A stretch of 64,000 bases of DNA from Hyaloraphidium curvatum SAG 235-1. Its lineage: Eukaryota > Fungi > Monoblepharomycota. The first letter of the stretch is position 1; each line of letters starts with the position of its first letter. The notes beneath the pieces are model-generated. The model had not been told where the DNA came from and did not search any database. It saw only the letters and a list, made by a program, of their open reading frames with translations. This document shows, one piece after another, positions 12,993 through 18,561 of this stretch. The stretch is taken from contig JAIVFI010000044.1 of assembly GCA_025558095.1 (NCBI GenBank), positions 186,001 to 250,000 on the forward strand, read 5' to 3'. Position numbers and translations under genes: made by a program.

Positions 12993-14375
12993 ATGCGCTC
13001 CTTTGCCGCCGCGCTCCTCGCCGCCCTCGCGCTCTCCGCCGCGCCGGCGGCCCTCGCCGGCCGCTTCTGCTCCCCCTCGCAGCCCCCGTTCTGCGTTACC
13101 GGGTCCACGGTTGGCACGGACGCGGACTTCCAGATAATCGCGCCCCCCGGCGTCCGAAGTGCGTCTTCCCGTGCTCGCCACCGCCGCACAGCGTTGACCG
13201 CCGCCCCGCAGATGGCTGGGTGGCCGTCGGCATCGGCGAGAGCATGCCCGGTTCCGAGATCTTCGCCTTCTGGTTCCCCGACCCTGCCAACGCGCCCACC
13301 CGCATCGTCGCCTCCAAGCGCTACGGCACCGCCTTCGTGATGCCCCGGCCGGCCGCGTCGGGCGACCAGACGGCGGTGGTGCAGCCCGATTCGGGCATCC
13401 TGCCCAACGGCACCATCTACATCCACTTCCGCCGCCCCTTCGCCGCCTCCACCGCCTCGGCCTCCTCCAAGACCCTCGTCGCGGGCCCGCAGTCCTTCAT
13501 CTGGGCCTACTCGGACAGCGACCGCCCGAGCCCCATCAACGACCCGCAGGCCAGCTTCAGCAAGCACGTCTTTTCCGAGCCCATGGGCGCCGTCACCCTC
13601 TTCGAGACCGCGCCCAACGCCGCGCCGCCGCCGCCGGGCACCCCCGCGGCGCCGGTGATCCCCGCCGACACGCTGGACCCGCGCAACGCCTACATCCGCG
13701 CGCACGGGATCCTGATGGCCCTCGCGTGGGGCGTTTTCGCGCCCATCGGCGTGGCCACCGCAGTATTTGCAAAGGGGCAGAAGTGGTTCCCCGTCCACGT
13801 ACGTCGCCGCCGCTTCCACCTCTCGCTGCGGCCGCTGACCCGCGATCACCCTCCAGTTCTACGTCATGGGCGCCCTCACCGCACTCTGCACCGTCGTCGG
13901 CTTCGCCCTCGCCGTGTACTACATCTCCGCCTCGGGCATCAAGTCCTTCACCAACTACCACGAGATCATCGGCCTCGTCGTCTTCATCTGCACCATCATC
14001 CAGGTGTCCCTCGGGGTGTACATCCACCACCTGTACGACCCGAACCGGACCAAGCGGCCCATCAGGAACCACGCGCACATCTGGTTCGGGCGCGCGGTGT
14101 CGATACTGGGGGTGGCCAACGTCGCGCTCGGGATCCAGCAGTACGGGAGTGGGTCTCCGCTCGCCCCCGGCGCATCCGGAATGCTGACCCTCCTCGCCGC
14201 AGTCTGGTACGGCATGGAAAGCACCACAAATCCCTACCTTTGGGCATATATCGGCTGGATCGTGGCGTGGACGCTCCTGACGATGCTCGGCGCCTTCCTC
14301 GTGCGGCGGTCGGTGGCCAAGAAGAGCGGGGGCCTGGTGAAGGGGGAGAGCGAGGCGGCGCTGGGGACCAAGTAG
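12993..14375 (+). CDS. Secreted DOMON domain plus cytochrome b561 membrane protein
   Basis: Signal peptide MRSFAAALLAALALSA; DOMON motif GWVAVGIGESMPGSEIF...FIWAY; b561 heme His motifs AHGILMALAW, WFPVH, YHEIIGL, AHIWFGR; three introns. Confidence 0.85.
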
Positions 14376-14609: not shown

Positions 14610-15149
14610 TCATTGCCGATTGAACCCAGACCACAAGAGTTTCACTCCAAGAGCCACCTCGAACAACCCGCCCGGAATCGACATGGCAATCCCGACGGCA
14701 TGCCCCGCCAGCTCTGCCACAGCCCCCGAGGCGAGTCCCACGTAACCCGCAAAGCCCCAGTTTGCGAACCAAGGCGGCAAGAGCCCCTCTGCGCCCCACA
14801 GCCGCATGACCGGCAGGCTCGAGATGCCGAGGGCGATCATGCCGGCTTGGTAGTACGCGTGCTTCGCCTTTGCGTTGCCCTTGGACGCGTGGTAGAGGCT
14901 CGCGATGAGAAGGCCTGCCTCTGCCACGCGACCGGCAAGGTACCCGTCCGAGACGCGTCCGTCGAGCCGGGAAAGCTCGGGGCGCAGATGTAGGGCGATC
15001 GCGGTGACCGTGACCGAGTTGGCGATGACCAGGGGGACTCCGGGGCCCCAGCGGCCCGCGTCGACAAAGTTGCTTCCCGCGCCGTAAAAGAACATGGGGA
15101 GCAGGAAGAGGAGGCCCGTGAGGCGGTCGGACGAAAGAGATGACGACAT
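14610..15149 (-). CDS. DUF4386-like membrane protein (bacterial type)
   Basis: Intronless, 179 aa. Motifs GYLAGRVAEA, LLPPWFANWGFAGY and PGGLFEVALGVKLLWSGF match my recollection of the DUF4386 pattern. Confidence 0.7.
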   Translation of the reverse strand: MSSSLSSDRLTGLLFLLPMFFYGAGSNFVDAGRWGPGVPLVIANSVTVTAIALHLRPELSRLDGRVSDGYLAGRVAEAGLLIASLYHASKGNAKAKHAYYQAGMIALGISSLPVMRLWGAEGLLPPWFANWGFAGYVGLASGAVAELAGHAVGIAMSIPGGLFEVALGVKLLWSGFNRQ

Positions 15150-15229
15150 TCCGAGGCCGGTGCGGGCGGTGATCGCAGACGATCTTCCGTCCTGTCCCCC
15201 GGATCCGCGACCAACAACTGTTCGACGTG

Positions 15230-16942
15230 ATGCCGGCCGACGACTATTCCAGCATTCCCGCGTCCGTCTGTGCGCCGCCGGACGCGTTTACGGACGTTGC
15301 GATCCGCCGGCGGCTGCCGGCCACGGCGGTCGACCCGCGGTTGCTTCCACCAACGCTGCGGCCGCGACTGGCGGCGCCGTTTCCACTTCCAACAAGCATG
15401 GCACGTGAATTAATGCTCTACAGATCTCCTTTGAGCTATGACGACTGCATCGCCGCTTACCGGAACGGCCTGCCCGGGTTCCGCGTCTTGGCGGAGTTTC
15501 AGCGCTTTCTGGCGGTAACCGAGCGCAGATTTTGGATCTGGGTGGTTGGAATAGGGCTCTATTACGGGACCATGGTCGCCCTGCTGGTTGCCGTGTACGT
15601 GGGCCGCGGTCCTGACGGCTCCACGTCGGCCTTTGCCACCGCGGCCGTCGGGATCCTGTTTGGGTACGTTCACTACCCGCTGATTGCCTTGAGGCACCAC
15701 TGGGTGACCTCTGCGCCGCTGTTTTCCGCTGCGGATTCGAAGGACTTGAGCTGTGCGCCGCACGCGTACACGGCGCGGTACTGGACCGTCATGGGCCAGT
15801 CGAAAAGAGGAGTCGAGGAGGGGCGCAATGGTGAGGACTCGGAAGAAACAAGGGCGTTGTTTGGGCACCGAGCGCCACAGAACGGTTTTGAGCTCGTCGA
15901 GCCGTTTCTGGAGCCGGATTCGCGGGCAGCGTCCCGCGACGCCATGCCCGGTTTTGCGAAATCGGACGTCTGCCCATGTCTCCGCTGCGCTGGCATTTTT
16001 GATGGCGGCGGGTGGAAGACGATTGTAGTGTTCTTTTTGGGTCACTTTGGAGTGCACTTTACTCTCCAAGCGGTCCAGGTTGCGCTGGTATTCTGGGACC
16101 TCTGGGCAACGGGCAGTCTGCTGTACACGACTGCATGGGTTCCAGCCGTTCTGGCCGTGAACGTCGCCAGCTTCGTCGTTTTCTTCACCTGGATGCACGG
16201 GCACACGTCGTTTGTCCTTAGCAGCATGCACATTGGTCTCCTTGGGCGGACACAGCACCGTGTCGTTACCGCGGCCGTCGATGCACTAATCTGCAGCTGC
16301 ACTGACCGTGTGCGGACATTCCTTTCCGGCGAAACAAAGCACGATGAAGCGCCGCATGGAGCACACACGGCACCGCTGTACCTACTTTGTGGGGAGGACA
16401 TTGCTGCTTTCTACAGAGGCGCGCAGTTAGAAGCCATTTACGTCACCGCACCGCTCGTGCTGGCCATCTGGACGGTGGCCGTTGCCCTGCTGTGCTCATT
16501 TCCCTTTGGCGGGTCTTGTTTCCCTGCTTGGGTGCCTGTCATTGTCCATGCGGGCGTGTACATTTCTCTTTATAACCTCATTTGCTTGGCACAGGCCAAC
16601 ATGAGTGTGACGAGGCTGTCTGCGGAGTTTGGCCGCGCCTCGGAGCGGATTGGTGCCGCATTGGTGGAGCTGGCTTCGAGCGCTGGATCGCCACCCACGG
16701 TACAGGCCATGACCACAGACCCTTCCCGCGCGTATCTGTTTGCAGCGCTGTCGGCAGAGCTCGCGGCCCACAGGGACGAGCTGCGACGGCTCGCGACCAC
16801 GCTCCCGCGGATCAAGGCGTTCGGATTCGACCTGACGTTTTCGGCGCTGCGCACAGGGGGCCTGGCGGCGCTGACGGTTGGCGCGGCGCTGTACCAGGCA
16901 TTTCGTTTGCGGATCCAGCTGGGGACGTTCTGCAAGCCGTGA
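15230..16942 (+). CDS. Intronless multipass membrane protein, putative gustatory-receptor-like (7TM ion channel) family
   Basis: About 7 hydrophobic segments, no signal peptide, a long helical loop before the last TM, and C-terminus IKAFGFDLTFSALR...LTVGAALYQAF. Confidence 0.6.
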   Translation: MPADDYSSIPASVCAPPDAFTDVAIRRRLPATAVDPRLLPPTLRPRLAAPFPLPTSMARELMLYRSPLSYDDCIAAYRNGLPGFRVLAEFQRFLAVTERRFWIWVVGIGLYYGTMVALLVAVYVGRGPDGSTSAFATAAVGILFGYVHYPLIALRHHWVTSAPLFSAADSKDLSCAPHAYTARYWTVMGQSKRGVEEGRNGEDSEETRALFGHRAPQNGFELVEPFLEPDSRAASRDAMPGFAKSDVCPCLRCAGIFDGGGWKTIVVFFLGHFGVHFTLQAVQVALVFWDLWATGSLLYTTAWVPAVLAVNVASFVVFFTWMHGHTSFVLSSMHIGLLGRTQHRVVTAAVDALICSCTDRVRTFLSGETKHDEAPHGAHTAPLYLLCGEDIAAFYRGAQLEAIYVTAPLVLAIWTVAVALLCSFPFGGSCFPAWVPVIVHAGVYISLYNLICLAQANMSVTRLSAEFGRASERIGAALVELASSAGSPPTVQAMTTDPSRAYLFAALSAELAAHRDELRRLATTLPRIKAFGFDLTFSALRTGGLAALTVGAALYQAFRLRIQLGTFCKP

Positions 16943-17072: not shown

Positions 17073-18561
17073 TTACAGCTTTGCAACAAGTGCATGGTAG
17101 AAAGGCTGAAGGCTGGACACCCTCCGCACGCCCCGCGCAACAATCTCCCGCAGCTCCTGCACCCTCAGCTTCTCCGACTTTTCCAGGGCGTCCTCGATCG
17201 TCCCATCGCCCTCCTTGAGCGCTCGAACGAGGGCCAGCGCGTCGTCGAAGCACCGCTGCGTGCCGGTGGTGGTCGTTGGCGACGCTAGCGCGGCGGCGTC
17301 CCCGATCAGGATGGTGCGGTGCTTTGGGAAAGCCGTCCGCGTGGGGCTGCGTTGACAGGTGAGCAACTCAATGCTGCGATCCGCGTCGGAGCAGCAAGCG
17401 TACCTGTAGCTCCAGACGGCCTGCGCGAACAGCTTGTCCAGCTTCACCGTGAGCTCCAGCATCTCCACGACCTTGGGCCACTTCCCCAGCACGTCGTCCC
17501 GCTTCGCAAAGGCGAGGAACTCTTGCGCGACCCGAGGGTCGATCGTCCCCGGCGGGAGCGAGTACAGATGGCGCTCGCCGTTGCGGTCCGTCAGCGTGCG
17601 GACCATGACGTCGTTGGGCACGATCAGGTACATGAACCAGTTGAAGCGCGCGCGACGATCGGCGCTCTTTCGGAACGGGGGGACAGGGTAACAGCCCCAG
17701 TACAGCTTCTCGCGCCGGTCGTAGAAAACGTTGAAGTTCCCGCAGCCGTCCGGCAGGATTGACTCGTACATCCCAGCGGGCATCTGCGAACGCTCCACGA
17801 GACCCCGAAAGATGATCAGGTTGTCGTAGCGCGGCCGCGAGGCGGGCAGCAGGGTGTGAAAGTCCGGCAACCCATCGCTCGGAGGGCTGGGCGGCAGCGG
17901 AGGCGGCGCCAGGTGGTCCTCCGAAGGTGGATAAAGGCCGAGGAGAAGGGTCCGCAGGTCCGACATGTACCCATCGGCGCCGACGATCAGGTCGGCGCGG
18001 AAGCTGGTCCCGTCCTCAAACACGACCGTCGACTTGTCGCCTCCAGGCTCCACCCGGAGCACCCGCTTGCCGCGCACGTAAGTTCCTCCGAGCGCAGTAA
18101 AAGTAGGTAACAATGCCGACATGATGTTGTCGTAGGAAACGGTGCCCCGCCACAGCTTCCTCGGCTGGTCCGCCGGCGTATGAAAGTCCACAGAGACCGG
18201 CTGCCCCTTCGCGTTGAGCATCTCGCTCCGCGAGAACCGGTGGCGTTCATAAACGAGGTGCTTCAGGTCCGTATCGCCCGTGACTTCGCTGTACAGGCCC
18301 AAGCTGATTGCGAGCCCGGCTCCGCGGTCCTCCAGGGCCTGCGTGGAGCGTTCAAAGGCGGTGACGCGGGGCTTCGGGTCAAGATTACGGAGGAGTGCGC
18401 TGTTTCGCGGTGAGATTGTGGTCGGTGGAAGGGTGAGCCGCCCCGGCGTCGAGAGAGCGTGAGAGATGGGAGACATCCACGCCGCGCTGCGAGGACACGT
18501 ACATCGCCGCGGAGAGCCCGCCAATGGAGCCTCCGATGATTGCCACGTCGCGCTGAGCCAT
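17073..18561 (-). CDS. FAD-dependent aromatic monooxygenase (2,6-dihydroxypyridine hydroxylase-like) with PTS1
   Basis: MAQRDVAIIGGSIGGLSAA (GxGxxG variant) then an intron; FERS...RGAGL, DLIVGADG, ILIGDAA; ends AKL*. Confidence 0.85.

Follow-up and report, generated by a model that had tools for sequence, protein, structure and literature searches.

A large gene family of Hyaloraphidium curvatum with a predicted 7TMIC fold and a candidate chemosensory role

Introduction

The 7TMIC superfamily includes insect ORs and GRs, GRLs, DUF3537 proteins, and PHTF (Benton & Himmel 2023, PMC9998090; Himmel et al. 2023 preprint). Solved receptors are built from helices S0 to S7, in which the last is divided into S7a, a β-hairpin, and S7b, and an anchor domain is formed from S4–S6 and S7a (PMC11100771, PMC12635824). 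The β-hairpin has been described for GRs (PMC12635824), which also carry a TM7 motif, (T/S)Yhhhhh(Q/K/E)(F/L/M) (PMC7746228). The solved insect receptors considered here are MhOr5 (7LIC), AaegOR10 (8V02), AgamOR28 (8V3C/8V3D), ApOR5-Orco (8Z9A/8Z9Z), BmGr9 (8VC1), DmGr43a (8JM9), and DmGr64a (8JME).

Outside animals, the superfamily is represented by one to few uncharacterised genes per species with no demonstrated function (PMC7746228, PMC9998090). The GRLs of unicellular eukaryotes were found by BLAST similarity to GRL and DUF3537 proteins; GRLs are single-copy, with one to six per species in protists, and plant DUF3537 (PF12056) families have 4–12 members (PMC7746228). PHTF, or Class-B, has an IL1 of more than 300 aa and a single conserved gene per genome (PMC9998090). 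Candidates from early-diverging chytrid-type fungi are SpunGRL1 and SpalGRL1 (PMC7746228).

The gene described here, likewise a candidate 7TMIC of a chytrid-type fungus, lies in a 64,000-nucleotide stretch of H. curvatum SAG 235-1 DNA (hereafter the window). It is a member of a large, diversified family that probably has the 7TMIC fold and lacks detectable sequence relatives among the named families. The family is previously undescribed; a literature search found no paper linking Hyaloraphidium with these receptors, and to our knowledge no earlier large non-animal repertoire of this fold has been known. H. curvatum is a member of Monoblepharidomycetes and is not known to form a flagellate or motile stage.

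Gene Structure and Neighbourhood

ORF analysis of the window places the gene at positions 15230-16942 of the forward strand as an uninterrupted 570-codon frame, encoding 570 aa and closed by a stop codon at 16940-16942, and alignments with paralogs indicate a complete intronless coding sequence. The start codon is the ATG at 15230, with an in-frame GTG at 15227; the choice of 15230 is supported by a family-conserved Pro10 motif within aa 1-65. Because the GC content of the window is 58-72%, long chance ORFs do occur in it.

It is very improbable that the frame is such a chance ORF, or a silent or decaying copy. Decay would fit the closest subfamily, which holds copies with premature stops (a TAG in L004, a TAA in L006), and silence would fit the absence of the exact ORF from the public protein collection searched and the want of transcription support from the two sequencing runs compared with 3,001 nt at the locus. 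Both runs are represented by Logan contigs, a data type silent on transcription: X1 gives one 5.4-kb piece at a depth of 470 that looks like genomic DNA, as it continues unbroken into the adjacent genes, and X2 gives three tiny low-depth pieces. Against these readings, the frame is intact over all 570 codons and retains every invariant residue of the 27-member alignment A2 (C248, C250, C253, R344, C430, N457, and G532), the near-invariant H213, T549, and C568, and the conserved N-terminal motif. Intact paralogs at 31-40% identity, along with remoter relatives in the hundreds that have invariant residues in common, show that the frame did not arise by chance.

The neighbouring genes are unrelated to the 7TM gene. 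Upstream, a cytochrome b561 domain exon (13866-14375, forward strand) has no evident functional link to it, and an intronless gene for a 179-aa membrane protein (14610-15149, reverse strand; DUF4386, 29.9 bits against a cut-off of 27.6) stands head-to-head with the receptor-like gene, 80 bp apart. Downstream, at 17073-18524 on the reverse strand, is an FAD-binding monooxygenase-like protein, again with no evident functional link.

Family Size and Genomic Arrangement

The H. curvatum genome that holds the locus comprises 31.9 Mb in 55 contigs, and the window occupies G000:C44:186001-250000 in it. Four intact paralogs at 31-40% identity to the query were gathered in alignment A1, whose profile marks 74 genome loci, most of them matched over the last ~135 residues alone. 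The ORFs at these loci encode 450-570 aa, and their homology to the query starts at TM3, in many cases already at TM1, and extends to the C-terminus. A profile of 27 members (the query and 26 paralogs) retrieves 445 clusters (50% identity) at an E-value of 1e-3 or better from 1.84 billion representative proteins, 286 of them at 1e-30 or better; 24 of the 27 relatives that were looked up are H. curvatum entries named 'hypothetical protein DFJ74DRAFT_...'. With a 132-member profile, the genome yields 893 first-look candidates, of which 86 were scored: 85 are near-full-length with E-values of 1e-109 or better, and the 86th is split in two pieces. These counts give a lower bound of at least 86 genes, and the family probably numbers several hundred in H. 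curvatum, in contrast to the small sets of GRLs and plant DUF3537 proteins and the single PHTF gene.

Most members of this large and divergent family are free of introns. The gene is indeed an intronless member of a lineage-specific expansion, as had been proposed from its sequence; the paralog count makes that expansion very large. Most genome matches were annotated with '1 TGA/TAG inside', for which a conserved in-frame intron was considered as an explanation; this was ruled out, the stop being the natural terminal one in six of six loci checked, and these six are therefore intact, intronless genes. Across 143 members the median pairwise identity is 29%, and the query's subfamily is a well-supported clade on a long branch.

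The members are found on 40 contigs or more, and tandem pairs and arrays are numerous among them. Locus L020 (G000:C12:711000-716000) packs at least four family genes or fragments, on both strands, into 5 kb, and further adjacent pairs lie at C14:38276-41831, C39:391475-395117, and C19:88515-93550; their organisation is that of tandem arrays. Within the query's subfamily, L004 (G000:C15:69723-71432) has a premature in-frame TAG before TM7b, L006 (G000:C46:47544-48731) has a TAA and lacks its N-terminal half, and L008 (G000:C22:652252-653888) has a frame change. These degenerate copies are consistent with birth-and-death turnover.

Some members contain a canonical 62-nt intron (GTACGT...CAG) directly before the TM5-TM6 loop motif; in L013 on G000:C38 it occupies L013:2736-2797 on the reverse strand and abuts the codons for A-M-S-S-C. 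L008, L020, and many C-terminal open frames of 135-160 aa change frame at that point of the profile. Together, the intron and the coincident frame switches suggest a conserved intron site that is lacking in the query and most members.

Predicted Architecture and Topology

The hydrophobic profile agrees with the roughly seven segments counted in the earlier note. A Kyte-Doolittle scan (19-aa window, mean above 1.5) finds six strong segments, at aa 101-126, 134-155, 264-283, 297-325, 400-432, and 434-456, and a weaker one near the C-terminus, at aa 537-557, is a helix in the AF2 model. Two such models were compared: that of the query, made with the 27-member alignment (pLDDT 76.7, pTM 0.80), and that of P0034, a typical family member ~19% identical to the query, made with 132 sequences (pLDDT 93.7, pTM 0.92). 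The layout is common to both, with pre-TM1 helices, TM1-TM3, long TM4, TM5, and TM6, a cytoplasmic helix, a β-hairpin, and a final membrane helix.

All features of the query are encoded on the forward strand. The cytoplasmic N-terminal region with the Pro10 motif (aa 1-65, 15230-15424) is modelled with low confidence. It is followed by the pre-TM1 helices (aa 70-98, 15437-15523), which correspond to S0 and are the point at which structural alignments with ORs and GRs start. TM1 (aa 101-126, 15530-15607) and TM2 (aa 134-160, 15629-15709), placed by hydrophobicity and the model, lead to IL1 (aa 161-257, 15710-16000), where a conserved helix and His213 are found; the loop is 97 aa long in the query against a family median of 56. 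Family alignments place the C248-P-C250-x2-C253 cluster (15971-15988) on the cytoplasmic side, directly before TM3 (aa 258-287, 16001-16090; hydrophobicity and model).

The three following helices are long (303-366, 383-427, and 435-484 in the query; 231-291, 305-348, and 353-403 in P0034). TM4 with its cytoplasmic extension (aa 303-366, 16136-16327) contains the conserved R340 and R344 of an RLQxRA motif and is part of the anchor domain. The modelled TM5 (aa 383-427, 16376-16510) joins a cytoplasmic extension to its membrane span, and EL3 (aa 428-434, 16511-16531) carries the motif G-S-C430-x-P-A-W with its invariant Cys. TM6 (aa 435-484, 16532-16681), with the invariant N457, contributes its cytoplasmic half to the anchor domain.

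The seventh helix is split in both models, as H498-524, EE--EE, H537-557 in the query and H408-424, EE--EE, H441-464 in P0034. In the query, the modelled cytoplasmic helix TM7a (aa 498-524, 16721-16801) is connected by a β-hairpin linker (aa 525-536, 16802-16837; family motif FLGFxV, with G532 in 129 of 132 members) to TM7b (aa 537-557, 16838-16900), the putative pore helix and the most conserved TM helix of the family. A short extracellular tail (aa 558-570, 16901-16939) with the near-invariant C568 ends the protein. The long amphipathic region that had been noticed after the penultimate TM is accounted for by aa 457-536, comprising the TM6 extension, helix 498-524, and the short β-hairpin.

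Loop lengths and K/R counts across 143 members fit the cytoplasmic N-terminus expected from the first inspection. The outer parts have median lengths of 3 (EL1), 15 (EL2), 7 (EL3), and 12 aa (tail) with a median of 0 K+R, and the inner parts have medians of 79 (N-terminus), 56 (IL1), 67 (IL2), and 64 aa (IL3) with 5-9 K+R. Extracellular loops are thus shorter than intracellular loops, as in 7TMICs, and by the positive-inside rule the short K/R-free outer loops and long basic inner regions indicate an N-in/C-out topology. At 56-97 aa, the family's IL1 is longer than that of insect ORs and GRs and far shorter than that of PHTF.

Structural Resemblance to Insect ORs and GRs

Insect OR and GR structures come first, with full-length coverage, in the exhaustive and Foldseek-based PDB searches made with the two independent AF2 models, in agreement with the OR/GR-like fold that the earlier note had predicted. 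For P0034, Foldseek against the PDB places GRs at ranks 1-6 (probability 0.90-0.99, E 0.013-0.055), and unrelated matches have probabilities of 0.23 or below. The query model gives a weaker signal in the same direction in the plain search; a second look at Foldseek's own PDB matches puts ORs or GRs in all of its top 15 chains. No E-value reaches 1e-3 in these Foldseek searches of the PDB with the query and P0034 models, and the RMSD to OR/GR structures is 5.5-7 Å.

The predicted fold matches that of the solved insect ORs and GRs. Both models have global similarity to Orco, ORs, and GRs and seven TM helices with the characteristic packing of 7TMICs. The TM7a/TM7b split and the anchor domain, features that had been singled out beforehand as decisive, are present in each. 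Helix lengths and the order TM7a-hairpin-TM7b in the models match the descriptions of ORs and GRs (PMC11100771, PMC12635824). TM7a differs in being longer, with 27 aa in the query against 15 in BmGr9 by the boundaries of PMC11100771.

Long helical bundles could give rise to such a resemblance as an artefact, or it could be convergent, with the family representing an unrelated new 7TM fold. This is unlikely. Of 48,161 chains in the exhaustive search, the 14-15 best for each of the two models, which come from different alignments, include 7 or 8 cluster representatives that are ORs or GRs, and the OR/GR alignments span ~300-350 residues, nearly the whole target, whereas other matches cover just 100-200 residues of the cytoplasmic bundle. 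The unusual TM7a-hairpin-TM7b arrangement and the N-in topology are both reproduced. The structures used to train the AF2 weights predate the first OR structure.

In the Atlas structure search, a 419-aa echinoderm protein has TM-scores of 0.51/0.67 and PHTF has 0.47. Clusters of DUF3537, 7tm_7, Trehalose_recp, and SRR are among the language-model neighbours, with scores of 0.87-0.91 for DUF3537, which likewise has a non-animal 7TMIC fold and an unrecognisable TM7 motif.

Sequence Searches and Conservation

The structural resemblance has no counterpart in sequence: none of the sequence methods used ties the family to GR, GRL, DUF3537, or PHTF. Scans with hmmscan find no Pfam match to any 7TMIC family in the 27 members, even at E-values up to 10, and none to Trehalose_recp (PF06151) in the query or its 26 paralogs; UreF and MLTR_LBD appeared in the Pfam/NCBIfam scans as sub-threshold chance matches. 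The models for 7tm_7 (PF08395), 7tm_6 (PF02949), DUF3537 (PF12056), and PHTF_N (PF12129) find nothing in the genome, which is weak evidence because control genomes are equally silent. Family profiles from alignments A2 and A3 find no OR or GR chain among PDB sequences and yield chance matches alone. Neither the query nor the 27-member alignment drew any match in a word-index protein search, a result that is uninformative since dozens of members at 25-40% identity are present in NCBI nr; Ala/Leu-rich words probably swamp its candidate list. A metagenome scan with patterns from A1 gave 146 pattern matches and no relatives; in A3 conservation is too low in every stretch to supply a pattern.

The family is therefore unlike the GRLs of unicellular eukaryotes, for which BLAST similarity was the means of discovery, unlike plant DUF3537 in having no PF12056 match, and without detectable similarity to insect ORs and GRs. 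As it shares the global fold, loop pattern, and topology of 7TMICs and lacks the sequence features of GRs/GRLs, DUF3537, and PHTF, it is classed here as a new 7TMIC branch or variant, a sequence orphan, and not as a GRL.

Kinship with GRs had been argued from the C-terminal string of the query, which is present verbatim, and from the spacing T-V-x5-Q in it. The spacing is confirmed (T549-V550-x5-Q556); as an argument for kinship it is weak, as Q occurs in the query alone of 132 members and Thr alone is conserved. The family consensus of TM7b is T(128/132)-V/L-x-x-G/A-L-W-S/G/T-V/I/L-L-R(117/132)-G. Compared with the GR motif, Thr is kept, position 2 is V or L and not Y, position 8 is S/G/T, and position 9, partly conserved, is V/I/L. 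Across the 132 members, neither of the residues that serve in GR gating, the Q and F of TYhhhhhQF, is conserved, and the query itself shares two of the four motif positions (T and Q). About one quarter of the TM7 motif positions are conserved, as in the GRLs of Spizellomyces (PMC7746228).

Information content is highest in TM7b (2.56 bits/column), high in the hairpin (2.0) and the TM5-TM6 loop, and lowest in TM1-TM5 (1.24-1.35 bits/column). Conservation is graded alike in ORs and GRs, where the pore helix is conserved and the ligand-binding half varies.

Two motifs distinguish the family from insect ORs and GRs. The first is cytoplasmic, in IL1 directly before TM3: L-x2-H(132/132)-x3-D-x2-C-P-C(132/132)-x2-4-C, represented in the query by H213 and C248/C250/C253 with an insertion of ~30 aa. 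This His/Cys3 cluster probably binds a metal (zinc) or, possibly, is a target of acylation. The second is a pair of nearly invariant elements outside the membrane, the loop between TM5 and TM6 contributing G-S-C-x-P-A-W and the tail C-P, which form a β-bridge in the high-confidence P0034 model. On this model, a disulfide between the C-terminal tail and the TM5-TM6 loop is plausible.

Proposed Function

The fold, together with the size and variability of the family, suggests ligand-gated channels with a chemosensory role. By analogy with OR and GR structures, four subunits would assemble through the anchor bundle (TM4-TM6 and TM7a), and their four TM7b helices would form the wall of a cation pore at the centre. 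The outer half of TM1-TM6, which is variable, would hold a pocket that binds a small ligand and gates the pore. Several hundred divergent paralogs could then serve as a repertoire sensing external or metabolic chemicals. The cytoplasmic His/Cys3 site before TM3 and the disulfide tying the tail to the TM5-TM6 loop would be the family's own additions to this scheme.

A more far-reaching reading is tentative, and the chances are somewhat against it: chytrid-grade, planktonic H. curvatum may use several hundred channels of the 7TMIC fold as a ligand-gated, chemosensory repertoire. Such a repertoire would have arisen in fungi, separately from that of insects, out of a superfamily branch too divergent for sequence searches, and would bear a cytoplasmic His/Cys3 metal site and an extracellular disulfide clamp on the pore helix as new regulatory modules. 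It is also possible, if rather doubtful, that the family has the 7TMIC fold and does something else, such as an internal-membrane role like that of PHTF, constitutive channel or transporter activity, or cell-surface recognition, with an expansion driven by forces other than chemical sensing. No function is known for PHTF or any non-animal 7TMIC (PMC7746228, PMC9998090), the Q/F residues that serve in GR gating are missing from the family, which has an extra structured His/Cys3 module in IL1 that is absent from ORs and GRs, and its structural closeness to PHTF is about that of PHTF to Orco. On the other side, hundreds of highly divergent paralogs that vary in TM1-TM5 and are conserved in TM7b make the pattern of a receptor repertoire and not of housekeeping proteins, and short K/R-free outer loops with an extracellular Cys pair fit passage through an oxidising compartment.

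On the 7TMIC reading, a 32-Mb fungal genome with no fewer than 86 such genes, and probably several hundred, most of them intronless, would contain the first large non-animal 7TMIC repertoire known. The question is raised of what a planktonic fungus senses with it. Because the genes are many, short, and easily cloned, they offer a test of whether the ancestor of the superfamily was already ligand-gated. The family also illustrates that fold-based screening still misses whole 7TMIC branches when a genome is absent from structure databases.

Occurrence Beyond H. curvatum

In the ESM Atlas, an unnamed cluster of 61 members, 609 aa in length, is the query's top neighbour on two measures, language-model features (0.95) and structure (TM 0.47/0.44). 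Apparently the same cluster in both searches, it may hold environmental relatives of the family.

The family is also present in another organism, a relative of H. curvatum. Three of the 27 relatives that were looked up (P0091, P0035, and P0066) come from Logan assemblies of run SRR26194948. Two contigs of this run, L041 and L042 (48 kb and 74 kb), have a GC content of ~54% and are syntenic with H. curvatum C1 (~1.185-1.198 Mb), with 68-80% DNA identity in conserved genes. Amino-acid composition gives no clean split between the H. curvatum proteins and those of the second organism. Contig L042 additionally encodes a YVC1-type TRP channel, hamartin, and PP2C.
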